Of a DNA stretch of 64,000 nt, positions 8,010 to 53,321 are shown piece after piece. Source of the stretch: Paraphysomonas bandaiensis (lineage: Eukaryota > Protista > Chrysophyceae); contig CBFFRP010000296.1 in NCBI GenBank assembly GCA_965644295.1, forward strand, positions 1 to 64,000, given 5' to 3'. How positions within the stretch are numbered: the first letter of the stretch is position 1; every line of letters begins with the position of its first letter. The notes under the pieces were generated by a model, which worked only from the letters and a program-made list of their open reading frames with translations, was not told the origin of the DNA and searched no databases. The position numbers were made by a program, and so were the translations under genes.

Positions 8010-8672
8010 TTAAAGGCAGCGATACACAATGATACGAATAGTTTTGATACTTTCCGCTGGGTCTGGATTTTGAGGCATATATTCTTCTGGTTCACCAATA
8101 TACACACTCCTCCACTTTCCCTGAATTTCGAGAAATTCGGCTGCTGAGCGACAACCACGAAAATCATCGTCCCATAGCTGTGTCCGGTGAGTAAACACCA
8201 CCACCCCTTCCGATTTACAAATTCGTACAACTTCTGTAAACAATGTAGTAAAATTCTCCACATAGGAGAATACTCCCACAGATATTACGGCTGAAAAGGA
8301 ACTGCTTTCGAAATGAAGAGATTCATCTAAACTACCCTGTTTCAATTCCGTGTACAACCCTGGTTTAGAATTCTTAATCAAATCGAGCGACACTTGGGAA
8401 ATATCAATTCCGCTCAAGTTAGTGAAATTATATCCACGGAGTGCCTCTCCACTCAGTCCAGTGCCACACCCCATATCGAGGACTTTGGTGTGCATGTCTC
8501 GCTGCGGATAATAGTCTGACAATATCTCTGCAACCCTCTGAGGAGCAGGGTATTTCCAGGACTTCAGGGTTTCATCATAGGAGTTTGCCCATGAATCATA
8601 GAGCTGTATCGCACCCGCAGCTGTCTTTGGAAAAGCAGCGAGGCCACTATAAGTTATGGGTTGATCGGTCAT
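8010..8672 (-). CDS. Class I SAM-dependent methyltransferase (METTL27/WBSCR27-like), intronless, 220 aa
   Basis: LYDSWANSYD N-terminus, VLDMGCGTGLSG motif I, GIDIS, FSAVISVGVF. Likely start is MTDQP at 8672 rather than the track start. Confidence 0.85.
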   Translation of the reverse strand: MTDQPITYSGLAAFPKTAAGAIQLYDSWANSYDETLKSWKYPAPQRVAEILSDYYPQRDMHTKVLDMGCGTGLSGEALRGYNFTNLSGIDISQVSLDLIKNSKPGLYTELKQGSLDESLHFESSSFSAVISVGVFSYVENFTTLFTEVVRICKSEGVVVFTHRTQLWDDDFRGCRSAAEFLEIQGKWRSVYIGEPEEYMPQNPDPAESIKTIRIIVYRCL

Positions 8673-9043
8673 GTTGCAGCAATGGCTCTCCTCAACTAGA
8701 CTCTGACTTTTAGGATCAGACAAGAATAGTGAACACTGGAGAGAGAATATCGCTATGTCGATGACGAGGTAAATCGCATATGTTCGGCCGATGCACCACT
8801 TAACATATGATTCCTGATAAGATACAGTACACACATGACACACATCAAACAGGCCCGTTTGTCCCAACAAAATTGATGGCACAAGCCCTAAGCAAAAAAA
8901 GCAATGGATACTGATATACTGCACTGTATGTGTTGTATCCCACTCTGCTATTTACAAGGAGCTGGGCGTCTCAGTCAACAAGGAACATACACATATATAC
9001 AGTTTTCTCAGTCAATCATTGGTTCATTTGTTGTTCGCAAGGT

Positions 9044-15064: not shown

Positions 15065-15497
15065 TGGGAATAATTCTTTTAACTGTGTGCTGTTGCTTAG
15101 TTAATAACATGGACATGTCATATCCGGAATATGTCATATCGTAGTTCTTGTGCGTGGTGTACGCCCGCGGGTATGGTGTTGTGGTACACAGAGTACTGCT
15201 GCACGGGATGATAAGTAAATACAGATTATACAATTGTATACAGAGAGTGTGGTGAACTTTACTTGTGGAAAAGTATCTGTGTATGAGACTGTACAGCAGT
15301 GTACTATACTCCGTATATACCACGCACGGATTCAGTAGGTATGGTTTGGGTCCTGTGATATTCATGTAAATTATAACTATGAGAGGTTTCGTAGAGAGGA
15401 ATATCTTCCACCTACTGAATATCACTTTGATCATGTAACAATTCGGCTGAATCACAGTCTTATTGTCCGTGTTAGCCTCATTGTAGCTGTCATTGTC

Positions 15498-18400
15498 ATG
15501 TTTCCAACCTCATGGCAGAAGATACCGACCATACATACCAGTGAAAATGGACGCGTGGTGATACGAACAGAATTATCAGAATCTAGAACTATTGTACTGG
15601 CCGACCATCCAATCCCTTCAAGAGAAATACTTAAATATAAATTTCACAAATCAGCTACTGGAAATGATAGTGAGAGAGCGGGCGATGTATTGTCACCTCA
15701 TGCCGGCATAACGATTGATCCTCAAACTGGCGTTCCAATTCCTAGTACGTTTAGTAGTGGTTCAACAAGTTTGAGGGGTGAAGATAAAAAGTATGTTGTT
15801 GATGACATGGGAATAGATATATCTTCTGCACCTTCCCAAGATGTTCTTGAAATAAGCTACCCAGTGTATTACTGGGAGACAGAGGTGTTATCTTCTGTGA
15901 ATAGCGATAATGACACATCCAGTGTGGCAATTGGCTTGATTCCTGTGTCTAGTGAGCCTTCAAATATTGGATTTGAAGGTATCCAAGGGAGTATAGCTTA
16001 CCATAGCTCTGGCACCAGAATCCAATACCAGGAAAGAAATAAAGTTCCAAACACAGGGTTTGGGACCCATGATATTATTGGGTGTGGCTGGGAAGTTGGT
16101 GGGGAAGGGAATGTATTCTTTACCTGCAACGGGCGGTTGATCGGCCGAATTGAAAAGGGATTTGGGGCACAAGGGCAGACTTACCTGCCATCTGTAGAAT
16201 TAACTGGTATGGGCACTACCGTTCGCACCAACTTTGGACACACCAAGTTTCAGTTCAACACACCGAAGCTAGTTATATGTAATATTGAAATGGTCGAGCG
16301 TAGAAATTCTGTAAGTAGCTCCGCTACTAGCGGTGTGGTCAACAATGACAAAGGTGATGCCAGTAGCGCTGAATGGACTGGTATAATGCAAACTGTTACT
16401 GGAAGCAAGTCCTTGTCGTCTAATTCATCAAGCGAAGTTCGTGTAAGTGGACATTTAACATCGAGACCCGGAAAACAGCAGTCGTTGGCGGGTGTCTATG
16501 GTCACCCACCTGCCCGACACCGCTCAGTAAACGAACCGCGCGGCCCCAGACATAGTCAACTCCCTCAACCACAATCAGCCCCAATAGCTGGGCGTCCAGT
16601 ACCGTTAGTGCAGTCGAATCCATGTCCGCGACACCCGGTTACGACTCCTTCACGCCCCACACTAGCAAGTTCCGTATCTGACAATGTCACCACCCATACG
16701 AGTCGACCGGAAGTCCGACACCCCACGCCGTTGACGCCGATCACCGACCGCCATGTGCAGTCTGGTTTCAATGTAGATCAGTCGTATAACAGGGTTTATA
16801 TCGACGACTCCAATGAAAATGATATGGTTGCCCTTGCGTCGGCACTATCAATGGAATATGATGGAGTCCCTGGAGATGCTGTGCCATCAACAACCGCTCT
16901 CTGGACACAGCAAGATACCACCCAGACCGTCGATACGTATACATTACTACAAGCTATTTTGAGTGATTCAAATGCTGCAAACACTCCACCACCTCTAAAT
17001 GCGCAAGAGGAAAAGCTCCCGTCGTCAACAGATATGCGATTCGATAGCCAAAATCTCTATGAGGTGGTGGCATCTGTAAGTGCTAATTTAAAGAGAATGC
17101 AAGAAAAGATGATGTCGGCTATCAACGGAACGCCAGAGGTAGGTCACAGACGTACACTAAAAGCTAGTTGAACAGCCGCTTTTAAACATTTTACGGCTGT
17201 TTCTACTTTGACCTATTTTGCATGGTTACTTCATTTGTATGCGCGATGTTGTATGTAAGCTTCAGTTTCACCTTGCAACCATATTGGCGATATGAATGTC
17301 ACGAATGAATATGACTGTTTTTGCACAGGATGTGTCGCTGGCTACTCTTCTAGATCTTAATGACTCCGTGTCATTCATACTTGATACTGCGAGTGAATAC
17401 TTAGCTACCCAGCAGTCTCTATATTCAACTAGGCAACATGTCGACAGCAACGACGACGGTCTGAGTGATACGGCAATTGCTGTGGCGAACCCGCCGTCTA
17501 AAGACGAAAATTCAGAGAAATTGTCTTATTTGGCAGAGGAGCTGCCTTCTGTGGTATGCGTGTTATATCTATGATTTGCTTTCTATTGTGTGTATTGAGT
17601 TGTTTGGGTGTGTGAAGAGTTTTCTGCACGCAATTTGTATTGACAGCTGTTTGGCAGGTGAATATCATGTACATGCTCCGTAGGGGGAGTCGGGCGGAAA
17701 TATCGACTGCTGTGCGCCATTTGCTGACTCTTTACGGCTGTAATAAAGGTGTTGAGGGCTGTGTGCCTTCCGAAAGTACAGTTGAATCTGATGCCATCAA
17801 CGATATGCGCAGCGCTGGTATGGCGATGCTTCAATTTTATTGCTTCGTGCATTGTAGTCGCTATGTAAAGTACATCAGAATTGTGGTAACGTAGACTAAA
17901 ATTGTTTGATAAAATAGCTTCGCTCATTACTCATTGATATTGTTTTGAATAATCTATGTAGGAGGTCTTCAAACTTTGGTGGCGGCATTCCTACGGTGTG
18001 GGGAGGGGCATGACGTCTTATTACAGGCACATTTACGTTTTATTCAATGACCCTACATTTTGACAACTATTCGTAGATATCAATTGCTATTGCAGTCATG
18101 GTAGCGAATGAGAATGACTGGCACTTGCTTGTGAAAGGTATACAGCATTTTTTCGTGACCCCATTTACTAATTTTTGTTCCAGATGTGCATGCCATATTG
18201 TCTGCACTTCATCTATTGCTCGTTAAATCTGGTGACATACAAGACGATCAGCTGGGCCATATGTTTCGCGATAGCCGCCGTTTAGTAGCCGCTGCCGTAT
18301 CGAGACTGTGTTTGGTTCTCTGTGTCGAGTGGGGTAAGCCAACTGGGGCGTCACAAGCGTTAAGAGATTTTGGGGCCGATTGGGAATCTGAAAAGCTCCC

Positions 18401-21400
18401 TTCTTCGGTTTTAGATTTTCATCGCAAGTTAGCAGGTTCGAAACCATCTTCGCGGAGCAGCTCTAGTAAAGGTATCATATCATATGAATATGACATCTGT
18501 TGCAATATGATGTCGTGAGCTTCGCTGTTATTCTCATAGGTGACAAGGAGGCTAACCTGTCGCCAATGCTGAAGGCTTTGATGCACATTATAAAGACCTT
18601 GTGCCCGCTACCAACTTCTCCACCTCGATCAGCAGAGGCGTCTCCCCGGTCGCAGTTTAACACCGCGAGGACTTCTCATGAATACAGTGACCGTTTCTTA
18701 CGAGACAACCCTGAAGCAGGTTGGCTGTGGTGTCACTTTGATGTCACAAGAATAATTTATGAGACACCGATGTATGCAACTAGTCCACAACAAATATGAC
18801 TGTGATTGTAGAACAACATTTTTCTGTTTATTGTATTTATATCAACTGTATTAACATTTGGTGTGGTATTTCAGTGGCAGTAACCCGGGTAAGATCATCG
18901 TCGTATGCATACACGTCTCCACACTTGTTAAACACGGGCTACAACGATGACGGCGACCACTTGACTTCCTCACTTCCAGTGCTGTCGAAGCCTGTAAATG
19001 AGTCTGTGCAATCCTCTTCAACTGCTTTTCATCGCTCTCTATCTGAAGCAAGCGGTATGAGTTCTCTGTCAATTCAAGGAACTAAATTTCCTAAAATGCG
19101 AATTAATATTCCCCCATTGAATATTTCAACCCCGTCAGAGGCGTGCGAAGACTGCAACGTCGAGCCACAGATTGATATGGTCATCGTGTTATGTAGCGTT
19201 GCGATCAGCAGCCTTGCACAAATTGAGGAATGTCGTGCACCACTCGTGGCTGATGGTGCGCTGTCGTTGCTTGCAGCGTGGCTAGATGTAGCAGCCGGTG
19301 TGCTGTCGTGGCACAATGCGGCAAGACTGCAAAATAGTACTCCAAGTAGAGATGACGAATCGTCAGTGGGACTAAGTATCAGCTCCGGAGCCTTAGATAC
19401 ACTGGACACTGGCATCGAACATAAAAATTCGTCATTTGCCAATTCACAGGAAAAAAGAACTCATATGCCTGGTGAAATATACCGCTGTCCCAGTGCTGCA
19501 AGTGAGACATCTATGGGTGGTGTCATACCTTCTGGTCACCCTGTTTACGAGCTGATTAATAATGTCAGTGCTGCTGTGGCATATGTGACGACATCCAATA
19601 GTGCTCCTTCTGGTGCATCAGGTAGACGAAATAGTGATTCATTTGGGCCATCTGCGAGTGCCTCGAATTATACAATTGGCAGAATTGATGCACAGGTACT
19701 TGCTCTCTCATTTTATACTCTAACGCTGTTGTTCCATTATCAGTCCAATTGACTTCTACTATCGTGTTCCACAGGTCATGGGAGATGGACTTGTCTCTGC
19801 CATCGGCCGATTTATCAATGCATCTACATTCGACTATTTGGTCTCAAACCAAACGTGTCTGAAGCGTGTACTGTCTCCAATTTTGCCCCGTGGGGGAGCG
19901 ATCGCTCTATCGCAGGCAATGTGTTCATTGGCTAGCCGGTCGCAAAATCGGTCACCAATGTTGGATGCTGGAGCGCCTCACGCTATTGTGCGACTACTGG
20001 TAGATGCTATTTCCCGAAGACGTAAACTGGACTATGGATTTGAAGTGGATGAGGTAGAGGATGAGTTTCCAACTGAGGAATATGGACCACAAAAGTTGGA
20101 GAGGTTACACAAAGAGCGGGAAGCAGAAACTGCTTACTTACGCACCCTTGCGCAAAGCTGTCTTAACATGCTATCGTACTTCCTTGCGGATAGTATTGCC
20201 TCACTTCCCAGTCAGACTGCTATGAGTAAGCCTCTCGCGATATCATCATCAAATTCATTCGCTTCTCTGGGGTCTGGCAGAGGCTCGCTGTCTTTGCCCT
20301 CGATTGTAGAGCTTATGATTCATCCACGTGTGGTGGATGCGGTAAAGTATGTGACCAATCAACCTAAAGGAGCATGTAGGTTGGCTGCTTTGCGTGTAGT
20401 TTCTATGCTCGTAGAATGGCCTGAAGCCCTGGATGCTATGTATGCGCATCGCTTCAGTGATATATTGGTAAGTTTTTCTGCTCTCAGTCAATGCATTCCA
20501 CTGATTACATGCGTCTATATAGGCTGTTATAGTGGCAGAATCGAATGATATTTACGAATTTGATATCATACCATCCCGACCCACAAAGCCTGATCGTGGT
20601 TCGAGCCAGGGTAGTAGCAAGACAGAGAGTGATGATATTGACGGCGGTCAGATCAGCAACCAAAGCTTAGAAGTGTTGATGCGAGCTTGTTACACGCTTG
20701 CTCACATTTGCATTGCTAATGTGAAATATGCAGCAGAGCTCTTCGAGAATGGATTAATGACAATAATGCTCAGGACTGCTCGGTACGATCATATAGAAGT
20801 GCAAAGACAAGCTGTCCGATGTATTAGTGGCATGTGCCAAGTGCTATCATCTCTTTTTCCCGGACGTCACCCGTCGATAGTTGTTGAGAAACTAAAGTCG
20901 GAAGGTTCTGAAGTTAAAGCCATTCGAAGTCATTCAGACAGCACTAATCAAATTCGAGCTCAAGCTGTGAAGTAAGTGATGTTGTTGTATATAGAGTGTA
21001 TATGGATTGATTATATATGTGATATAGACTTCAAACTACAGTGTTGGCATTCTCTGAAGCCATGCATTATCTGGCGCACGCATTGACTTCACAGAGCTTT
21101 TTAGTACAAAAAGAAGCGCTTGTAGGCATCTCTTTTTTGGCAAGAGATGATCTACTCCGCGTTGGCGTGGTTGAAGGCCCTTTGCGGGTTATCATTCGTA
21201 TTATGTTGGACACCACCTGTGAGCCTGAACTCAGAGCATTAGCGGAAGTAGTTCTTGTCAACATTGGATTTCAAAACGGTCGGATAGACATGCAGGTCGT
21301 AGCTAATGACTACGTGCTACTGTCAGAATGGTTTTACATGCGGAGGTCGCTGCGACCTCAAGCACTTGCTGTCGACCTATTGCACCATTGGGTGGATGCC

Positions 21401-24400
21401 CTCTTTTATGGGACTGACGTAGCTGACCGCAAAGCGAAGCAACATTTCTTATTGACTGAACTCGGCCAAGCATCCCCGGATGACGTTGATGAGAATTCTT
21501 TGTCGCTTCATTTACCGAATGGAATAGAAATAGACCTACGCGATACTCTCGATCTCCTTGGTTTGTCGCTGCATAGGTATTTAATGGAACGAATAGTCCG
21601 AAACTCCATGTTGCGCCGCTCCAATCAGGCGACATCAAGTAGCACTGGTGGGCTCAGTAGCATCATATCCCATATTAACCCCAATGCTGGACTTCGAGAA
21701 GCTTTGCTGCAACAGTTCATTCATCTATTTGATGCGTGGACAATGCTTCGCAATGGGGCAGCCGCTGAGGTCCACGCCAGGATGAGTCTAAGCCCAAGTA
21801 GTGTTCCCAGCCCCTCAACATCTGCGGAGTTCATGCTTGACGATAATCCAATTCCCCAACCACCCACCCTTCATAGACTAAAGACAGGCCATATCACGGA
21901 GAAGTTTTTTGCTTTTATGTCGTTTTGTTCTGGTCGAGCGACTGCGGAACACGTACTCCGAGAAGAAGCCAACGAAGACCGCGAAATGCAAGCTGCGAAG
22001 GAAGCGGCGCTGTCGCGTGGCGAAACGATATCAGCTCGAGATAGGGAAGGTGGTGCGTCCGTGAAAGATCAGAGCAAAGATAAATCAAAATATAATGATA
22101 AAGATTTGCCTTGCACGATAGATGACGACATTGATGATTCGCTGAATACTCCACCGGCGAAAGTTCAAGAGTTGTTGGATATGTTTTTCCCGTCGAGATT
22201 GTATCAAATGTACTTAACTGATATGCTGTCAGTTGGGGTTCCTTGTGAGACAAGTGTAGAGGCAACCGTTGACCCCACTCCCACTAGGGCTCACGCGGGC
22301 AGCCTTCCTCCTACACGAGCAATCCACGCGAATGACATTTTCAATCGATTTACTGTACCTGAACCCAAGAACTTTCGGGCACTGTTGTTATCATCTCGCG
22401 AGTACTACTCATTTGGCAGGGAGGGAAGAGTCATTCAACGCATTCTCGATGACGTAGCTGCAGTGGAAGGTCATAACGGACCTGCTGGAAGTTCCCGCGT
22501 AGCAGAGGAGGCGTCTTACATGGGTGGATACGTGGATGTATCGAATACACTATGGACATTATGTTTTCGTGACAGTACTTTTGAAGGCGAGTTTATGATA
22601 TCTTTGCTTTCTACACTGCGCCGATGTCCTCAGATTGCTTCACTGAATTTTACCTCGCGCCGCCCAGAGCAGCACTCCGAGTTAGGGTTTTTGGCGGGAA
22701 GTGTACCTGGCACAGTACGCTTTCTATCATTTGACGCCGCGCTTTCCAGTCCTGCCATCGAGATCATGTGTGTTATGTTACGCACTCAAAACCCAGCGTT
22801 TTCTCGAGAGGTTTCCATTGATGCTGCAGATGTCAGTGTTGATACAGAAGATAATATTGCCGATAGGTCGAACAGTGGGTTGCTGGGTATTGCAATTAAG
22901 AATACGAATTTTTCTTCCGGTGATCTGAAGAGCGTATGTGAGTTATTGGACCCAACAGAAGAGTATTTGAATATTATGAATTATCGTGGCCATTCTAACT
23001 CCGCTGATGATAAACGAAGATCAAGTGACGGAGGAGTACACACTGCCTCTATATTAAAACACGTTATGAATCGCCGCTTATATGGATTAAAGTACTTGGA
23101 TTTAAGCGATAACCGCCTGTCAGATGAACACTGTTCTAACATCATATGTGCTTGTATAGATGGACCTCTTGAGGGCCTAGAACTGAGAGGAAATTCTATT
23201 CATAGAGGTCTTTATTTCTGCCCACCGCTGGCTACTTACCTCAGTTCTAGAAACTGTCAGTTGCGACATTTGGGTCTAGCTTCGAATGCATTAATAAATG
23301 CGACGTTTAGATCGATATTAGATTCATGTCAACACCCTGGCAATGACGTTCTCACCTCACTTGATGTATCTTTCAATAATTTGACATCATCAGACAACAA
23401 TAAGTCGAAAATTCGTGAGTTTCTAAAGAAAAATACCTGTCTTCGGATGTTGAACTTATCGTACAACCGTTTTTCGAGTGACATGATGCATGCATTGCAT
23501 CTCGGGTTGCTTGAAAATGACTCCATCATACTGCTGCGGTTGGAGGGACATCAGTCTGTGAGTTCCGTGGAAATGCAAAGGGTTCGTAAGTTAATAAAGA
23601 AAAACCGTGAACGGTATGTAAATGGACACCCTTTGAGTCCACAGACGCCCCAAACAGTTAGTTCTTATCGCGTACCAGATAGCACTGCTAGCAGTGCTGG
23701 GATGCCTGGTCAGTTAACAGCGTCAGAAAAGAATATCGCCGACAGATGTGAACCCACTCATCCTCATCATGTACACAGTGAGTCAGATATCCCCCACGTT
23801 GGAGCCCAGTTCGGAACGCAGGCATCCTCTCCGAGTGGGCAATATGCAGTGGATGTACCAACAACACCCCAATCTCGTACGAGTATTTGTCGTAAGGCAA
23901 ATACGGAAGCAGGCGACAAAAAACATAAGTTAGGTGACCCTCTGTCATTGGAACACAAACCAGGCATGAAAGATACAAGTACAAGGAACATGAGAAACGA
24001 TGGGTCCTCCCACTCAACCCCAACTGCCACTGCAGTGAATATTCCCGGTTGCCCATTGCCCACATCACCCCAGAATAATTGTACAAGCGAACCTCTAAGT
24101 GCCGTAGCAGTTCCGTTATCAGACACTGAGTACGATGTGAATGGTGAGGACGTGTGGCAAGATGATGACATCGACGAATATGAGGACAATGGAATGGTAT
24201 CGAGAAATGTTTTATGTGTACTATTTTCCGCGCCATTGGCATGGATGGATACCCGTAACCAAATACATCCAATACAGACGCTGGACTACGCAGGTGAGAG
24301 AGAAACTCTTTTGCAAGTGTTCAGAGAGGCCCAAAGAGATATCGGACTGAGAATGGATTTCGCCACAACAGATACTCTTCGTACTGCTGTGACTTTGGGG

Positions 24401-25993
24401 TGTAAAGCTCTTCATTTCAGTGGGCACGGACATCCTCACTGCTTAAATTTCGAGGATGGGCGCTCTGGACTACAGTTCGTAACGGTGGAACAGTTGCGGG
24501 ACCTTTGTCAGGCTGGGGGGCTCAAGCTTGAATTCGTGTTTGTATCTGCGTGTTACAGCCGTCGTGCTGCAGAGGCATTCGCTGATGCAGGCGTCCCACA
24601 TGTGGTATGTGTGCATATAGATGCGCAACTGCTTGATGCTGCAGCTATGGCTTTTACTCGAGCATTTTATCTGGCACTAATTTTTGGAGAGACTGTAAAG
24701 CATGCATTTGACATCGGCACACAAGCGGTCTCAGCCTCTCCTTATGTGCCCAACAGCTCCTTGGAACGAAGCAAGTTCATGCTGCTACCTGAAGGGGATC
24801 CTCATGATACCCCTGTGTTTACAGCCAAGGCGATCCGTCGTTGGCCGTCATCTAAATCTTCATTACGTGGTCTAACATGTGATCTCGTTGATACATCATA
24901 TCTTCCGCAACCGCCAGAAGATTTTGAAGGAAGGGAAGTGGACATGCATCATACCATCAAGTTCCTTCTCAATCGACGGCTGGTTACAGTTGTAGGAGAG
25001 GCTGGGGTCGGAAAGAGTGCTGTAGTGGTAGCTGTATGTTCATACATTTCGGAGAGACGATATTTTGATGACGGAATTGTATATGTGCGCCTGCAGGGTG
25101 TGGCAACATATGAGGGAATGCTGGCACAACTCGGAAGAGCAATATCGAACGGCCCGCCACGTCTTGCTCGAAGGTTCACCGCATCTATGAGAACTTATCA
25201 CGACACTAAACATTTACCATTGAATAAATCTCCTGATGGTGTCTATGGGAGTGAAGAAGACCCTATACGAGAGCAAGAGGAAAAGCTTTTGCATTGTCTT
25301 GGGCCACTGAAGGCGCTGATTGTCATGGATCATATTAATGACCTTTTGTCATCTACCGGAGGAGATACTAGCACTGATTTAAAAATGTTTTTGTCGCGTA
25401 TATTTGATCGATGTCGTCATATGAAGGTACTTTCATCCTGCACTATATCGTTGAAGTTGCTTACACCGCTATGTATTTAAGGTGTTAACGACCAGCACAG
25501 ACCCCATCGGTCTAGGACATGGGTTTGGTGTTGTCGAGAATTGTGTTTCTGTTGGCACGTTATCTTTGCGAAGCTCATTGCGTTTATTCGCCCGCTTATC
25601 GCCGTGTTTGGCCACTGGAGCGGAAAAACTAAAATTTGTGAGATCATTGCTAATTCCGGACCAAGCAGAAGTAACTTTGGAGAGCCGAGAGGTGGTGTTA
25701 ATTTTCTTTTCCAAAGCTTCCATTGATCATTGTCTATTATGCAGGTGAGTTCCGCTGCAGCCCAAATTCTTTACATGCTTGGTGGAGGCCACCCAGGGAA
25801 AATTGTCAAAATAGCTTGTGAAACGAATAAGCAGAATGTACTAGCGATGCTGCAGAAAGGAGAAAAGATTATCCACGGGAGGAACCGCTCGACCGCAGAA
25901 GACGCTACGTCCCGTACTCGAGCACAATACCCGGTTGATAACGGGGGGCAGTCGGATCGACATGATAGTAATGGTAATCTCAGAGAGCTGTGA
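15498..25993 (+). CDS. Giant (~3,150 aa, ~13 exons) SPRY - UIM/GAT-like - ARM-like - LRR - CHAT protease - STAND/NB-ARC-like NTPase protein
   Basis: All track ORFs from 15498 to 25993 join in frame through intron junctions (e.g. PE|DVSL, DAQ|VMG, IL|AVIV, VK|LQTT, MK|VLT, RE|VSS). SPRY at ~15850-16260 (DIIGCGW..VFFTCNG..VRTNFG); LRRs (LKYLDLSDNRL, LEGLELRGNSI, LTSLDVSFNNL, LRMLNLSYN); CHAT LHFSGHG 24410-24430 and VSACYS ~24542-24559; Walker A GEAGVGKS 24995-25018; Walker B ALIVMD. Confidence 0.85.
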
Positions 25994-28723: not shown

Positions 28724-30286
28724 GTAGTGAATGTCTGATTATTTAGCAATAGGCGTTGAGACCTTGCATCAATTAGTGGCTAGAAGAATGCTAGTCATAC
28801 TAGTTAGACCACTACCCGTAACTAATCAATACAAACTCTTTTATCCTACTATTTAACGCTACGAAAGCTGCTTGTGCGTCGCCGCAAGCACCAAGGTGCA
28901 ACCACTTCCGTTCTTTTTGTGTGATATGAAATTCGTCTTTATCGTGTGTCCGTGGACTCACCGGCGCTTTTGATCTGGGGGTCTCCCTTTGGGATGGGTC
29001 TCCATTGGTTTTGGAGGGGGCTCAGCATTCTGAATTAGGGTCCTGAGTGCACCTAGTTCCAGATGTGTGGGTTGGGAGTGGTGGGGATTGTTGGGAGGAG
29101 GAGTTGGGTTTGTAGTCTGTGTTACTGTGCTCCTGTGGGGCCGCGGGTGTAGATAGAGTTGTCGAAGCCGTCGGCGTTGTGGAGGTCTGGGCAGTCCAGT
29201 GCTCTGTCGGGTAGGACCTGTGAGGTGTGCACGTGTGTCTGGAGTCGGATACGCTGTGGGGGGTCTTCGTTGGACCCCTAGTAGTCGAAGGACTCTCGGA
29301 CGTTGTCTTGACTGACTGCGTTTCGGACGGGGTCTCGGGAGTAGCCTGGGCGGCCTTTTGGACATGGTGATATAGCGACAACCGCGATCCTGTAACATAA
29401 GCTTCGCTGCAGTGTAAAGCGGTTGCAGGAGATTAATAACCACTGTTTCTAGGTTCCGTAGACTGTGAGCCGTCAGGTGGTTGTGTATGTCATCTCCGAA
29501 GACCGTTTCCAGTTGGGCTGCTGTGATGGTTCCAGTCCAGTATCTCTCGACCTGTGGGATGGAGGGATTCCAGGCTCTGCTGGAGAGTCTCCGTAGTGCA
29601 GATGTGATCCAGTTGGGTAAGGTCTGAGTTCTCTGTATTTCGTGTAGCACATTTTTATGCGATTGAAATGCAGTTTCCCTTATTTGGGTGATGGATTCAT
29701 GTGTGCAGTCGAGGCACATATGTTTTAGGGAATCTAGTCGAAACCCGCAGTCAGAGCATGCGGCTTTGGTCAGGTCAAGCCCCTGTTTGGTTTTGGCCCG
29801 GTTCCTCCCTATGCAGAAAGATTTGTCCCATGTCAGTGCCGTGTTGAGAATTCTTTGGCGTAGATTTGAGCTGAGTTTGTCTTTGGATGCACTGCCATCC
29901 GCTTGAGCTAGTTTGCGCGGGAGGTGTACTCCGCTATTGGTCCAGTAGCCAGGCGCTCGATCAGGATTGTTTCCGTAGCGTTGATCTCTGGTTGAAGTGT
30001 AGTTCTCAAGTGTCCTTAGGTCGCAGAGATCTTGGAAATCAGTAAGGAGTGGGCTAGAGTAGTATGGCCGTCTTGTACTGTGCAAACGCCAGTGCCATAA
30101 TCCAGCGGTTAGTAAGCGTTCAATGGCACTGTCAATCGCAATTGTACAGACAGTGTAGTTATTTTTTCCAAGGATGCGATCGACTTCATGCCAGTCTTCA
30201 CCCGCGACTGCGTCCGCAATATAGATGCCCTTGTCCTCAAACGTCCACTCCGTTTCATCTGTGGTACGTCGTTCGGGATGGGACCT
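28724..30286 (-). mobile_element. 5'-truncated non-LTR retrotransposon (LINE): RNase H C-terminus, CCHC zinc knuckle, basic tail and 3' UTR
   Basis: Uninterrupted ORF to stop 28958: RSHPERR...DKGIYIADAVA (RNase H end), CSDCGFRLDSLKHMCLDC, R/P/T-rich tail. 3' UTR ends CATTCACTACT. The first ~17 codons of the track ORF come from the flanking repeat. Confidence 0.88.
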
Positions 30287-31099
30287 AGAATCTAACGTGA
30301 GCCGCATATATATAGAGTCAGCAGATATTGTTCTGCCCACTCGAAGCCTAATGCTGGTGTCACTTGTGAGTAGACGTCTTTGAATCCTCTGACGAATAAA
30401 CAGGCATCCCGAAAAAGGCCTACCTCAAGGACATCCGGGAATGGGCCCACCTCAAGGGTAACCGATGTATTGTGGACTGCCTACTGAAGTCAAGCATCCG
30501 GGAATGGGCCCACCTTAAGGACTCAAAACTTTTGAAGTTAGCAGATGTCAGTTATATCAACATTGTGCTTGCTCACTGTGTTCGCTTTGAGTGACAGAGC
30601 GAAAGTGGTTGCACCTTGGTGCTCGCGGTGAAGCACAAGCAGCTTTCGTTGCGTTTAATAGTAGGATATCAGACTAAAGCACAAGCTAGTTAACTAAATT
30701 TAAATGCTACATTAGTTCTGACTCTTAAACGCCTATTGCCAATAAGAAAACATTTACTATGACTATCTTATGTAGTCAGTATATTTAGTTTGTCTAAAAA
30801 CTATCTCACAGTTTACCGTTAGATTTTATGGAATACTGTCTCTGACAACTGTTTTATTAAAAAAGAAACGGTTATAATTTAAAAATTTTAAAAGACAGCT
30901 TTTAATAAATTACAGATAAGCTGAACTCAACATGTTTGATATTTCAAGAGATGATATCGATGTCATCTGACTGATAAGTTGATCACTACTTGTGATATCA
31001 CACGCTTGTGACATAAACGAAGAAGGTTACCAGTATCAGTTGGTCGTGTAATAGCAGCACTGTATCACTTCTGGGCTTGATTGTCAATACATTAGATAA
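30287..31099. repeat. 813-bp direct repeat, copy 2 (right flank of LINE insertion)
   Basis: Identical by eye to 27911-28723. Confidence 0.95.
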
Positions 31100-45429: not shown

Positions 45430-47281
45430 ATGCAAGACGGCGTGCATGCAGTTGAGGCGGTGGAGGAGCATGATCTCTGGGCAGGGTTCTCTGTGTCGTC
45501 CTGGTGCGATGCGGTTTCTCAGCCTGACTCCACCTTCTGGGAGCTCTACAAGTACACAACACAGCTGATTGAAGAGGAGCTGGCGATGGGTAACCATGAC
45601 ATCATCCTGGAAGTGGGATGCGGCACAGGAGAGCTCATCAGCAGCATTACAACTGATGTTCCACGAGTAGGGATTGATGTGGGTAGCATGAATATTTATG
45701 ACCGGGTCTAATGCTCTGTGTAGATTAACCCGAGATTTGTGGACTGGTGTCGCGGAAAGTATGCGAATATAGATTTCGAAGTTGTAGATGCAACAGAGTT
45801 AGTGACTTGGTGGAGAGAAAGTCCATATAAGAACTACAAATCTCCTCTTATACTCTGCTGCAACAACACCATGAATATTATACCTCCTTCAATTCGTTAT
45901 ACAGTTACGCAAGAGATGCGAAAATTATGTTCTCCTGCGGGTCGTGTTATGGTAAGCTTCTGGAATGGCCGTTACTTTTCACATGGTGTCATGGACTTTT
46001 ACTTACGGAACCCTGCGCTTTGTGGACCAGTAGATGTAACTACGGATATCAACTGGAAAACTAACACCCTTCTAACTAAATCTGGCTATCATACACAGTG
46101 GCTAAACCCGGAATGGGTCATGCGGCTTTTGAAATGCTATGATCTCGATCCGCAGTATTCTTCATGTCTCATTCCCGATGACTGCCTACTGACTCATGGC
46201 CTGGGAATATTTGTGTTTTTCTCCTGCAAAACATCTGGAGCTAGAGATCTTTATGATTCGGATGATGCCCAGATGTTTTACTCCCAGGTAAGATTTAGAT
46301 TGCAATCCCATTACGATGAGCAGATGTGATGCAGTGATAATGTGATGTATGTGCTGATCACACTTTCTAACTATATGTACTGTATTGCATATGAATGCAT
46401 GTTGTGCATTGAGGACGATATCCTATTCTTCTCGATTAATTCAGTTTTATATATTAAAGGTGTGGGGCGGGGGCACCATGCATCTTGGTCGGTATGAAGA
46501 TGTCCGTCTTTCGTCCGACCCGCACGTCTTATCTTCGCAAATTATAAACGCCCAAAACCTTCATGAAGCTGATTTTTGTGCGGCAGTAAAGGCCAAGATG
46601 GAACACTCTGAGGGACGCCCAATTCAATGCCGGGTCCTCGATATGGGATGTGGCTACGGCGGTTTACTCAGAAAGTTCAAAGACTACGGTTTTTTGCGGA
46701 ATGGGATTGGAATTGATTTCAGCGCTAAGATGTGTCAGCAGTGCATACTTAATAACCAACTGGCGTCTATGGGAGATGTAATCGACGTTCGTAATGAATC
46801 ATTCCTTGACACTTCTTTATACGAGGAGACTGTGGATGTGTGTGTCAGCATGGAGGCATTCCTTCACGTAGGCATAGAGCGACATGCTGCGGCACTAAAG
46901 GAAGCGCACAGAGTTCTACGCCCTGGGGGTTGGCTACTTTTTTCTGACATCCTCGAATGTCCTGGCGTAGATCGTGATGAAATCAGGCCCATATATGATG
47001 GATTACATGTTAAGAAGCTGGGAACTGTGGATGGTTATGTCAAATTAGCCGGGGAAATTGGATTCAGTGAGGTTTCATTCGAGTCGCATGCTCTGAATGT
47101 ACCAACCCATTATGAAGCTCTCCACGCTCTGGTGGTAGCATATCGAAATCATCCCGACCCTGCCAAGCGCCTACAAGCTTCTCCGGAGTTTTTGGAGAAT
47201 CAATTGGCTATCATGAAAGCGTGGGCTAACCTCTCTCCGGGGCGTATAGATTGGGGTATTTTTTATATGCGAAAGGTTTAA
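45430..47281 (+). CDS. Two-domain SAM N-methyltransferase (glycine/sarcosine/dimethylglycine MT-like), ~544 aa, 3 exons
   Basis: Exons 45430-45678, 45724-46287 and 46460-47281. Domain 1 ILEVGCGTG...GIDIN. Domain 2 has the SDMT-like LYDSDDAQMFYSQVWGG.TMHLGRY, VLDMGCGYGG, EAFLHV and RVLRPGG. Confidence 0.8.
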
Positions 47282-50496: not shown

Positions 50497-53321
50497 ATGG
50501 CTCATACGTTGGAAAAATTCGATGAGGTCAAACCATTTCCAGTTCTTCTTGCTGCACCGAAGAAAGACCCTGGACTTAGTGTACGTTAATCGTTGCTATT
50601 AATCGATGCATTGACGCTTTCATACAGAAAACAAGTCGGCACACAGCCGGTCGGAAACTGAAAACTCAGAAATCGTTACCACTGAAAGTAAACACCGAAA
50701 GCAATGCTCTTCCTGGTATTTTAAAGGCATCGAAAACACAAGTTCTTCCTGCTCAAATGAAGATGACTCCAACCGCTGCGGCTGGCTCCGTGTTTGTTGG
50801 TTTTAATGCGTCTAATATTCACTTGGATTCCGTCAAACCGCAAGTGAAGTCGTCGACAGAAGATATCCTATCCAAGTCACTCAACCAGGTCAACTTAAAT
50901 ACACAAGCAGCGATTCCAAAGAAGCAAGACGAATCTCTGAATGCCCTCCGCTCTTACACATCTTTGATGGATGAGTTTAGCTTGCACAATTTCATGATTT
51001 GGAATGGCAGTGCATTGAAAGACACCCCTGAATTTCAATCGTACCAGAGAACGTACAAGAATCAGTGGAGTTACATTAACTCTGTTATCTTCCAACTTGA
51101 AAAGTTGATGACCGATAACTTCGTCAAGCTTGCGATAGTGTCGGGCGTAAAGGTGGCTGAGTACGCCATACTGAACCTTCCGCAACTCCAACCACATGAA
51201 CTACTGGATTGTGTTTGCAATGCAGATCAGATTCGACCTCAATTGAATTCGTTTGCTGGAGATTCTCAGGATCATATTCTAAGAGCTGCCATCAAGATTC
51301 AAACTCTCGGACGGCGTTGGTTTGCAATGTATCGTTTTAGAAGTTTGAAACGCCGGCTGACTGCAGCAATTACCATTCAGAGCATTATTCGTCGTTTTGT
51401 CCAACGGTGTAAAGCCCACACTCTGTTGCAGAATCTTGCTGCCGTTGCAGAAGAAAGGTGGAAAGCCAACATGAAAGCGTTGATGGAGGACTGGCGACGG
51501 CCGACACCAAGTTCTAATAAAAAGATCATTGTTCATATTCCTTCTGTATCTGCTAGTGAATTCTTTCGGGTTAACATGTCCCATTTGGCTTCCATTCAGA
51601 ACTCCGTGATATCGTTTTTATATCAGCTAGCTGACCCGCGAGTTGAAATTGTATATATTTCTCCATGTCACTTAGGCCCCACGGAAAGAAATTACTTCGA
51701 GAAGTTTTTGGCACTTATGGATATATCTATATTACCTAATCGACTAAAATTCATTGTACCAGAATTGTCAGCCCAGTTACCAGACAGTGTTCCAGTCGCA
51801 CAGGCGTTGTGGTACTCATCGTCTACGCTGAAGAAATTGCGATCGATAATATCTTTTCACCATGGCGACGTGGTGATCATACCTGGCGACCTTGGATGGG
51901 CAGAAAAACGTATCGCTTCATATCTGGGTGTTAAAATGCTTTCTCCAGAGCCCATTGTCGCCCATGAAATGACTTCTCGGTCTCAATCTAAACGGTTATT
52001 TATGGAGGCCAATATGAACATTCCTATTGGGGCACACGACATATACTCTGAGGAGGATATGTTAATATCACTTACGCGCTTGATGGCGTCCAATTTAGAC
52101 ATAAATCGGTGGCTGATTCGTCTTAATGTCGACTACAATGGGGAAGGCACAGCGTATGTGGATGCTGGTAGTCTTCCCATCATACAAGCTCTGAAGCAGG
52201 AGCAGACTGCTCTTATGAATACCAGCATTGACCCGGACTGCTGGTTTGAAAGGCATGTCCAGCTTAACGCAAGGAAGCGTATTCTGGCTGTATTTCAAGA
52301 GACGGATATGGGAATCGTGAAGATATGTCGCGATGACATGTTTCCTAATTGGAAAGTTTTTATGCGATTTGTTGCGGAAGTTGGGGCTGTGGTGGAAGCT
52401 GAACCGCTAGGTTCACAAGGACGGATCGAAAGCTACTGCTTTGTCGACCCATGTGGGGGGTTACACATTTCTAAGGGGTCCGTGGTTGTTGTGGATGAAT
52501 GCTACCAGCGACAGAGTGTTGTACATCCCCAAAATATCATCCATGAGAGGTCTTTGGAAGGCGCTACCCAAGCTATTGTGTCAAAGCTATATGATGTCTA
52601 CGGTGTGATGGGTTATGTAACCGTCTCGTTTTCTGCTTTCTGGGATGCGTACGACCATACACCGAGAATATGGGCGAACGGTATTCGCTTTGGAATGAAT
52701 TCTTCTTTCGGTGCATTTCAGACACTTGGACTTCTTATACGGCCGTTTGATAGTGAGTTGCTTAAACGCCCTTGTCTAGTTCCGCTTCCGACAGATGGTA
52801 AGTGTACCTTTACGTGCTTATGTTCATCCTGGAATGAATTTATTTGTCTTAACCATTGTGCCGTAACTTGGTGTTGCATTCAGGTCGCCATTGTGTTCAT
52901 ATACCCTCTGCGATTCACACGCCACTTTCCGATAGTCGTGATGATGTTTTCTTTCGCCTCTGTAAGATGCATGGCATCGCCTATGATCCTGAGAGGAAGT
53001 CTGGTGTTTTATTTTTTCTCGTTGACAGCATCATTGGTATGTAGCGTGAGGTATCCCTCCTGATATGTAATCGTAGTATAAACAGGTGGTACTCTTAGCA
53101 TGTTGGCAGTAGCAGACACTAAGCTGAAAGCTCTTGAATGTGCAGTGCAGGCGTTGACTTTCATATCTAGAAATTTTGGAAAATGTGATCGTCGTGATCT
53201 TGTGAATGATTGGGCGGGACTGCAGAATATCCTCAGAAATCTCAAGATGTATTCGAAAAGAGAAGCGCTCAAGGCACGGGCGGTGTATGATGAATCCCAA
53301 AAAAGAAGCACCACCTTATAG
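50497..53321 (+). CDS. IQCH: IQ motif-containing protein H (IQCH-like), 4 exons
   Basis: LMDEFSLHNFMIWNG..LKDTPEFQSY, two IQ motifs (AAIKIQTLGRRW, AAITIQSIIRRF), IIVHIPS, PIGAHDIY, FFRLCKMHGIAYD..G. ATG 50497 splices in frame. Confidence 0.85.

Follow-up and report, generated by a model that had tools for sequence, protein, structure and literature searches.

A single-copy gene of Paraphysomonas bandaiensis joins SPRY, ARM-like and leucine-rich repeat regions to a predicted CHAT protease and a STAND-type ATPase core: a candidate one-chain apoptosome-like switch of stramenopiles

A 64,000-nt stretch of Paraphysomonas bandaiensis DNA (assembly GCA_965644295.1), which is the first 64 kb of contig C296 (CBFFRP010000296.1) and is called the window below, was analysed for one large gene at 15498-25993 on the + strand. 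The gene has 13 exons, and its spliced coding sequence (CDS) of 9,441 nt encodes a protein of 3,146 amino acids (aa) with no internal stops. From the N-terminus, the domain order was SPRY, a serine/proline/threonine-rich (S/P/T-rich) stretch, ARM-like repeats, leucine-rich repeats (LRR) of the ribonuclease-inhibitor (RI) type, a linker, a CHAT domain and a STAND-type ATPase. The protein combined a predicted protease with an intact dyad and a nucleotide-binding core that keeps the canonical motifs; three modules for protein binding lie in front of this pair, with a long, flexible tether in between. We give a probability of about one half to the reading that the gene encodes a conserved protease switch, released by a partner and activated by oligomerisation in the manner of an apoptosome contained in one chain, and not a diversified pathogen receptor.

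The locus is expressed as one gene encoding one 3,146-residue protein. Public sequencing runs were compared in the form of contigs from Logan assemblies over 15400-21399 (6 kb) only. A 10,077-nt contig of the run X1, which was guessed to be RNA, spanned this interval, extended past both of its ends and skipped ten parts, of which nine were bounded by GT..AG and one by GC..AG after a 2-nt shift of the cut. The contigs of a second sample, X4, were identical in sequence to the window and carried 7 joints shared with X1. Moreover, a 5,376-nt contig of X4 began at the 20971/21028 joint and, from its length, must pass the stop codon. The locus was unspliced in the DNA run X8. By arithmetic of the contig coordinates, the X1 contig should span from ~15393 to ~26520, which would include the full CDS and the untranslated regions. 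An earlier note made from the letters alone had joined the exons into one open reading frame (ORF) of ~3,150 aa, and the unbroken frame of 3,146 aa in a single transcript-sized unit agreed with this claim. Two or three adjacent genes (SPRY/ARM; LRR; CHAT-NTPase) fused into one RNA contig by the assembly would be an artefact of the same appearance, because Logan contigs are assemblies and a contig containing two genes is no proof of one transcript. However, all ten observed joints held one frame that continued without a stop over 3,146 aa, a single 4.4-kb exon held the LRR, the linker, CHAT and the P-loop, and the transcriptome-derived proteins P0032 (marked complete) and P0075 of other species shared the order from the N- to the C-terminus. 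Such an artefact is highly improbable.

The CHAT caspase-like protease domain (aa 2582-2797; 24188..24833, + strand, as for all features of the gene) was identified by fold, phmmer and Pfam. Profile and homology searches were run exon by exon, and the joined protein was translated for continuity and coordinates only. The Pfam profile PF12770 scored 21.9 bits on the ORF of exon 11, which was below the cut-off of 24, and 25.3 bits in the six-frame genome search, which was above it; the scores were 25-40 bits for homologues and 33-47 bits for prokaryote relatives. Because introns split the CHAT-ATPase module of the window itself, its fold was evaluated on the complete module of a homologue with 64% identity (P0007:505-1031) and an alignment of 70 sequences, and the predicted local distance difference test (pLDDT) value of the model was 90.9. 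Residues 13-228 of this model were superposed on the activated SAVED-CHAT filament protein 8tl0 with a Z of 24.4 and a root-mean-square deviation of 2.1 Å over 195 residues, and 8tl0 was the sole match in a sequence search of solved structures (phmmer E 0.001). The putative catalytic residues were His2661 (24425..24427) in the motif HFSGHG, which starts at aa 2657, and Cys2703 (24551..24553) in VSAC, the SAC of which starts at aa 2701. Both residues were invariant in 70 of 70 rows and were aligned with the His and Cys of 8tl0 that, after a constant offset of 20, are H375 and C422 of SAVED-CHAT. The profile score, the modelled caspase-like fold and the His-then-Cys dyad assign the domain to the CHAT class, with proteolysis itself as its predicted activity; the intact domain with both catalytic motifs had been claimed from the start. 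Scans of the CHAT-ATPase module with PADLOC and NCBIfam gave only noise at the level of the P-loop (E 3e-4 to 6e-3), indicating that the module belongs to no named defence family.

The STAND-type NTPase (aa 2814 to ~3106; 24884..25870) is interrupted by two introns and, according to the homologue model, consists of only a nucleotide-binding domain (NBD) and the first helical domain (HD1). Its 3' part was studied via intact homologues (P0007, P0015 and others). Residues 245-522 of the homologue model matched residues 108-347 of Apaf-1 (Z 16.2), 112-359 of CED-4 and 152-389 of ZAR1. Further fold matches of this nucleotide-binding oligomerisation domain (NOD) were obtained for NRC resistosomes, MalT, ORC/Cdc6 and TnsC (Z 14-15), with the NODs of Apaf-1, CED-4 and plant NLR proteins together at Z 14-16, and MuB was also among the matching AAA+ cores. 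All the structural matches stopped at the end of HD1, as did the protein itself, and no winged-helix domain was found after HD1 in the homologue model, which had short helices only up to its end. In STAND proteins, the winged-helix domain carries the MHD-type His that contacts ADP. The motifs of the core were the pre-P-loop motif PEDFEGRE (aa 2824; 24914..24937), the Arg of which was invariant in the 70-row alignment A1 (R261, with G260 and E262 at ≥90%), Walker A GEAGVGKS (aa 2851, with Lys2857; 24995..25018), Walker B ALIVMD (aa 2957, with Asp2962; 25313..25330) and the GxP motif GGHPG in the helical domain (aa 3078-3082; 25784..25798), in which G..G.P was nearly invariant in A1. FDDGIVYVRL was located at aa 2874, and KVLTTS at aa 2994 spanned the intron 25427-25481. 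The structured model of the homologue ended 24 residues past the GxP proline, and an unconserved tail of ~40 aa (25871..25990) completed the protein, the C-terminus of which was 64 aa past GGHPG.

All the motifs quoted in the earlier note were thus present in the spliced translation, and the N-terminal position of the repeats, with an end ~70 aa past GxP, was borne out. The name NB-ARC-like given to the NTPase was correct as to the STAND type and too specific beyond it, since the NACHT, nSTAND1, NB-ARC and AAA_16 profiles scored about equally. In the window, AAA_16 (24.0 bits), nSTAND1 (17.7) and NACHT (14.2) were all below their cut-offs; STAND profiles were at or above cut-off elsewhere, with NB-ARC 29.1 and NACHT 26.7 for P0075 and NACHT 45.1 for prokaryote relatives. 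STAND NTPases (NACHT / NB-ARC / nSTAND1) were reportedly defined in Leipe et al. 2004. The domain would belong to this class by its Walker motifs, GRE, GxP, modelled fold and probable descent, and departs from it in the missing winged helix.

The N-terminal region contains the candidate binding surfaces. SPRY (aa 124-248; 15867..16241) passed the cut-off of PF00622 (28.3 bits against 26.3), as its first assignment had implied, and was aligned with the SPRY region of P0032, P0053, P0075 and P0079. It is followed by the S/P/T-rich low-complexity stretch (aa 251-547, ~300 aa; 16248..17138), which was delimited by composition and had no Pfam match. The ARM/HEAT-like helical region extends from exon 2 to the start of exon 11 (17329..21430, approximate limits) and was delimited by weak Arm/HEAT matches at 20739-20846 and by collinear tblastn matches. 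The ARM score in the window was weak (16.5 bits in Pfam), but homologues reached the cut-off: Arm was above it in P0053 and P0075, with ARM_ARMC5 below it in P0036. The LRR horseshoe of the RI type (aa 1975-2392; 22367..23620) was modelled with AlphaFold2 from the window's own sequence (22178-23740, 60 homologues, pLDDT 83). The fold of the model was matched by the LRR of NLRP3 (Z 26.1) and by the RNase inhibitor (Z 24.4), and also by RanGAP and axonemal LRR proteins (Z 22-26). The earlier note had recognised the repeat type correctly, but its span of ~22870-23580 was too small. The linker (aa 2393-2581, ~190 aa; 23621..24187) was delimited by its composition and by the drop of pLDDT to less than 50 where the LRR model ends; the confidence was low up to 23740, the last position of that model. 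It had been described as a disordered acidic linker of ~200 aa; the length and low confidence were consistent with this description, whereas the composition was S/P/T-rich with an acidic patch only at the linker end.

The CHAT-ATPase region, used as the query of a word search, gave 203 proteins, none of which had a functional name. Those with a named source came from Triparma, Thalassiosira exigua, Proboscia, Durinskia, which hosts a diatom endosymbiont, and Mucochytrium quahogii, a labyrinthulomycete; the named relatives of the protein were all stramenopiles. Full-length relatives of 2,300-2,500 aa were collinear with the window from the N-terminal SPRY to the C-terminal ATPase, with a Pfam set of SPRY, Arm, LRR_6, CHAT and NACHT/NB-ARC/nSTAND1. 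The order SPRY...CHAT-NTPase was present in proteins of Thalassiosira exigua, of an unidentified transcriptome and of Mucochytrium quahogii, and in the Mucochytrium quahogii and Thalassiosira exigua proteins Pfam detected ARM and LRR as well. From these alignments, the full architecture is conserved across stramenopiles, including diatoms. The whole module was covered by 92 of 120 relatives, most of which ended within ~30 aa past it, indicating that the short C-terminus is a conserved feature. The matches of ~1,450 aa were about as long as the ORF of exon 11 (1,479 aa), and many of them may be single-exon ORF calls on metagenome contigs and not a short family of their own. No paper on this family was found in the literature, the coverage of which was incomplete.

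The copy number was evaluated via six-frame searches of the whole assembly (62.5 Mb, 669 contigs) with the module and the CHAT profile. One copy of the SPRY-ARM-LRR-CHAT-ATPase architecture was found, together with two other CHAT-NTPase loci. The first of these (G000:C132:120155-123016; L006:2156-5017) was a 954-aa ORF that scored 33 bits for CHAT, 34.5 bits for NACHT and 29.9 bits for an SH2 at its C-terminus. The second (G000:C55:1257-2608; L005), on a 13-kb contig, was a CHAT-NACHT locus (NACHT 31.7 bits) that extended over three frames with gaps of 38-78 nt and could be intron-split or decayed. About 10 NACHT-like loci were present in the whole genome. In the first 4,955 coding nt, which encode the N-terminal binding region, the window differed from the X1/X8 strain at 12 positions (9 synonymous and 3 non-synonymous), and 7 sites and one indel differed in 947 intron nt. 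These differences point to purifying selection on the supposed sensor half, in a small sample. The single copy, the unvarying domain order and the purifying selection speak for a conserved switch of the cell, in stress, death or signalling, and against a diversified pathogen receptor.

This evidence bears directly on the alternative that the protein is an innate-immunity receptor of the protist with the logic of NLRs, in which SPRY, ARM and LRR sense a pathogen and CHAT triggers the death of the host, e.g., via a pore-forming substrate. The LRR fold is closest to the LRRs of NLRP3 and NOD2, the SPRY domain of TRIM proteins recognises viral proteins (PMC8195603), and fungal and bacterial CHAT-NOD fusions are located beside gasdermins (PMC8851545). 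Moreover, the core most likely comes from prokaryotic conflict-type STAND proteins of patchy distribution, and the gene is subtelomeric: ~300 tandem CCCTAA repeats at 1-1830 of the window mark a telomere at the contig start, and the gene starts 13.7 kb further in. However, lineage-specific expansion and a diversifying sensor, the hallmarks of immune receptors, were not seen in this genome's census and the small polymorphism sample. The architecture was single-copy in the genome and invariant from labyrinthulomycetes to diatoms, the putative sensor half was probably under purifying selection (9 synonymous against 3 non-synonymous differences), and the neighbours were housekeeping genes. The earlier note, which had proposed an immune receptor, had itself named a single-copy orthologue of invariant architecture as evidence for a housekeeping role, and this is largely what was found. 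An immune receptor is hence unlikely. A search of the genome for gasdermin (PF04598) gave no match, but the control genomes were equally silent, and the result was uninformative.

For the preferred reading, a conserved switch, the following sequence of events is proposed. The protein would be cytosolic, and the SPRY, ARM and LRR surfaces would bind a conserved partner or signal. Once the partner or signal is bound, the CHAT-ATPase module would be set free on its linker tether. An AAA+-type core of NBD and HD1 can by itself assemble into rings or filaments that depend on ATP, with ORC/Cdc6, TnsC and MuB as examples. By analogy with these proteins and with SAVED-CHAT, the AAA+-like core of the window's protein may oligomerise with ATP bound. 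The clustered CHAT domains would then turn active, as in SAVED-CHAT filaments or as caspase-9 does on the apoptosome; CHAT domains of SAVED-CHAT are switched on upon oligomerisation (10.1101/2023.06.23.546230). The active CHAT would cut substrates in some conserved pathway of stress, cell death or signalling. The off state may come from docking of the N-terminal solenoids on the CHAT-ATPase module; docking is proposed because the winged helix is missing and the usual ADP lock is excluded.

Several points weigh against this switch. That the N-terminal domains act as a sensor is assumed. The Logan contigs prove continuous RNA coverage and not single molecules, and both 3' introns, which lie outside the RNA-compared stretch 15400-21399, are inferred. 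The Walker A Lys was replaced by Arg in 60 of 70 rows, all in one branch (Triparma, Thalassiosira exigua, Proboscia), and P0006 and P0007, the window's two closest relatives, have lost the Walker B Asp. Since the Walker motifs are not uniform, ATP hydrolysis, and perhaps binding, cannot be the universal trigger, and the decay of the motifs in other branches makes it unlikely that hydrolysis is essential family-wide. Furthermore, a protein that has no winged helix cannot adopt the canonical off state of STAND proteins, in which ADP is the lock. The description of the protein as nucleotide-gated in the earlier note is accordingly plausible for the window, with its canonical Walker A and B, but it has neither a family-wide constraint nor an ADP-locking winged helix behind it. 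As to descent, the root of the tree described below was assumed, the tree search was short, and the sampling of prokaryotes was biased by patterns derived from eukaryotes.

The same variation would suit a conserved housekeeping or developmental protease scaffold, in which the ATPase remnant serves only for structure or dimerisation and the protease is run by its N-terminal partners, e.g., in processes of the cell cycle, the flagellum or vesicles. The loss of the Walker residues beside an unvarying dyad, the missing winged helix, the conserved single copy, and the similarity of the RI-type LRR to axonemal and RanGAP LRR proteins (Z 22-26) are in favour of such a scaffold. By contrast, the canonical GKS/GKT was present in the window, in all ten rows of its clade and in the Mucochytrium protein (the Walker A Lys was also kept in 11 of 11 prokaryote rows), and the window retained the Walker B Asp, although its two closest relatives in the clade did not. 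Moreover, the STAND-specific GRE and GxP were invariant or nearly so family-wide, indicating that the nucleotide pocket is still constrained. We consider the scaffold somewhat unlikely.

The origin of the CHAT-ATPase pair was explored by searching prokaryote genomes for two peptide patterns, the most conserved ones of the eukaryote motifs. Seven loci in metagenome-assembled genomes (MAGs) matched CHAT and NBD at 35-39% identity, and 5 of them reached 40-47% over the CHAT and P-loop region. The hosts were Chloroflexota (Thermoflexales, Anaerolineae), Methanothrix archaea and a Desulfobacteraceae. The seven frames were 761-1,047 aa from stop to stop (902-1,047 aa in four of seven), and the CHAT match started within ~25 aa of the frame start in five of seven. 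In Pfam scans, two of three of the proteins were CHAT-NACHT/NB-ARC proteins running on into TPRs. The neighbours of the MAG loci were gyrA, znuA and genes for shikimate and prephenate dehydrogenase, indicating that these CHAT-STAND genes are real prokaryote genes. The close form was rare: in a sample of 201 genomes of the class to which one carrier belongs, that carrier was alone in having it, and four others had distant versions. Near-identical CHAT-NACHT/NB-ARC-TPR genes were found in Methanothrix MAGs (L008, L009) and Chloroflexota MAGs (L007, L010-L012) from anaerobic habitats, and the patchy spread and rarity suggest gene transfer between archaea and bacteria.

A maximum-likelihood tree from a quick search placed the 70 eukaryote rows in one clade (SH-aLRT 100). 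With four distant prokaryote rows as the root, this clade fell among the close prokaryote rows. The paralogue with SH2 (C132) was outside the clade of the SPRY family, on a very long branch. Furthermore, the two-domain arrangement of the model matched bacterial STAND clusters in the ESM Atlas (TM 0.77), and a feature search pointed to bacterial clusters of CHAT with AAA_35, nSTAND1 or NB-ARC. The link to bacterial CHAT-STAND proteins drawn in the earlier note was therefore upheld as a close one, with 35-47% identity and the eukaryote clade among prokaryote rows. These sequence relationships suggest that the CHAT-ATPase pair descends from prokaryotic CHAT-NACHT/NB-ARC-TPR proteins. In the simplest reading, a CHAT-STAND-TPR gene was transferred from a prokaryote to a stramenopile, the part past HD1 was lost, and the remainder was fused behind a eukaryotic SPRY-ARM-LRR region; the fusion would have occurred before the split between labyrinthulomycetes and ochrophytes.

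The gene model comprises a chain of open frames on the + strand, the longest of which is the 1,479-aa ORF at 21041-25480. The start ATG at 15498 is the first in-frame ATG downstream of the upstream stop, and the stop codon is TGA at 25991-25993. Exon 1 (15498..17138; aa 1-547) ends at the RNA joint 17136>17327 (+2), which has GT..AG ends; it had earlier been taken to reach the ORF stop at 17171. Exon 2 (17329..17553) was placed by RNA joints and splice sites, and RNA joints also delimited exons 3 (17658..17817), 4 (65 nt; 17962..18026), 5 (61 nt; 18077..18137), 6 (18184..18471), 7 (18540..18719), 8 (18875..19695), 9 (19775..20467) and 10 (20523..20971), with joints in both X1 and X4 for exons 3, 4, 5, 7 and 10. 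The joint 18024>18075 at the end of exon 4 was cut 2 nt further right, which gave the 50-nt GC..AG intron 18027-18076, backed by RNA contigs of the two samples. The remaining 11 introns were GT..AG and 46-190 nt long. Exon 11 (4,399 nt; 21028..25426) has a 5' joint in RNA and a donor GT at 25427, and it contains, in one open frame, the end of the ARM-like region, the LRR, the linker, CHAT and the first part of the NTPase. Exon 12 (25482..25691) and exon 13 (25745..25993), which carries GxP and the stop codon, follow the two 3' introns (25427-25481, 55 nt, and 25692-25744), which were placed from the DNA and from the points where homologue alignments stop and restart. The alignments stay in frame up to ESREV in exon 12, the donor of which may be 3 nt further on (25694), and restart at SSAAAQILYMLGGGHPG in exon 13. 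A donor at 25638 for the last intron was ruled out because the homologue alignments extend to 25691, and the donor was reset to 25692 or 25695.

The neighbours of the gene in the window were ordinary and included a class I tRNA synthetase, methyltransferases, an Fe-hydrogenase-like protein, an IQCH-like protein and an FCP1-like phosphatase. Two ORFs of class I S-adenosylmethionine-dependent methyltransferases (Methyltransf_11, 55 and 68 bits) were located 38 kb apart on opposite strands, at 8010-8924 (-) and 46385-47281 (+). A 460-aa ORF at 28958-30340 (-) had no Pfam match. The IQCH-like ATP-grasp protein with an IQ motif (128.6 bits) was encoded at 50757-53063 (+). Animal IQCH is associated with the cilium or flagellum, which would fit a flagellated organism.

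A wider, tentative and rather unlikely extension is that an early stramenopile captured a bacterial CHAT-STAND-TPR gene of death or defence, truncated it past HD1 and joined it to a eukaryotic SPRY-ARM-LRR sensor in front; the product would be an 'inverted' apoptosome in a single chain, by which stramenopiles, including diatoms, carry out regulated cell death. We know of no identified protease of programmed cell death in diatoms. The family spans a major eukaryotic group that includes diatoms, which are key primary producers of the ocean. Asp-directed caspase-like activities of stressed microalgae are unexplained by metacaspases, and CHAT proteases are unmentioned in reviews (PMC5756287). If the extension were true, the family could be the missing source of such Asp-directed 'caspase-like' activities in stressed or infected phytoplankton, which is speculative. 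The family would also illustrate cleanly how the core of a prokaryotic conflict system was domesticated and rewired in eukaryotes. Moreover, it offers a natural experiment: its ATPase motifs erode (Lys becomes Arg, and the Walker B Asp disappears) beside a constant dyad, and the role of the NOD remnant is hence directly testable.

Fusions of CHAT and STAND domains are established in bacteria and are also known from fungi, and in both they serve as death or defence switches. Among the closest known systems are the prokaryotic CHAT-NACHT/NB-ARC-TPR proteins (e.g., L007:3959-6649 of Thermoflexales, L008:3959-6868 of Methanothrix and L012:3983-6868 of Anaerolinea), which have the same CHAT-then-NTPase order, 35-47% identity and near-identical catalytic motifs (LH[YF]SGHGHP and FVFVSACHS). 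These proteins start with CHAT and run ~450 aa past the ATPase into TPRs, whereas the window's protein ends after HD1 and has ~2,580 aa with SPRY, ARM and LRR in front. The CHAT-NACHT-SH2 paralogue (C132) has a module 37% identical to that of the window's gene and a long C-terminal region ending in SH2, and the scanned ORF is without SPRY, ARM and LRR. SAVED-CHAT (8tl0) and TPR-CHAT/Craspase share the protease fold with an aligned dyad, and in these systems oligomerisation driven by a ligand, or a conformational switch, turns the protease on (10.1101/2023.06.23.546230). Their sensor is SAVED, for cyclic oligoadenylate, or a CRISPR complex, and they have no ATPase; the window's protein has SPRY, ARM and LRR as sensor candidates and a STAND-type ATPase after the protease. 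Fungal HET-Q2-like CHAT proteins (PMC8851545) are likewise eukaryotic multidomain proteins with CHAT and repeats, and some are NLR-like with a protease of their own. They are clustered with gasdermins, and the NLR-like ones have the order protease-NOD-repeat, whereas the repeats of the window's protein are placed otherwise and its gene has no gasdermin neighbour.

The apoptosome of Apaf-1/CED-4 gave the best structural match of the ATPase (Z 16.2 for Apaf-1) and shares the logic of a NOD that gathers a protease of the caspase fold. Apaf-1 has the order CARD-NBD-HD1-WHD-HD2-WD40, in which WHD is the winged-helix domain, and recruits a separate caspase, whereas the window's protein carries its protease fused in front of the NOD, lacks WHD and HD2 and has its repeats on the N-terminal side. 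Among NLRs (NLRP3, NOD2, ZAR1, RPP1), the LRRs of NLRP3 and NOD2 were closest (Z 22-26), and the NOD matched ZAR1, NRC and RPP1 at Z 13-15. The tripartite order of NLRs (effector, NOD, C-terminal LRR) is reversed in the window's protein (LRR...effector-NOD instead of effector-NOD-LRR), WHD is missing, and the gene shows neither family expansion nor a sign of diversifying selection. What sets this eukaryotic family apart from the bacterial and fungal CHAT-STAND fusions is the wiring, with the binding domains first, the protease in the middle and a truncated ATPase without a winged helix last.

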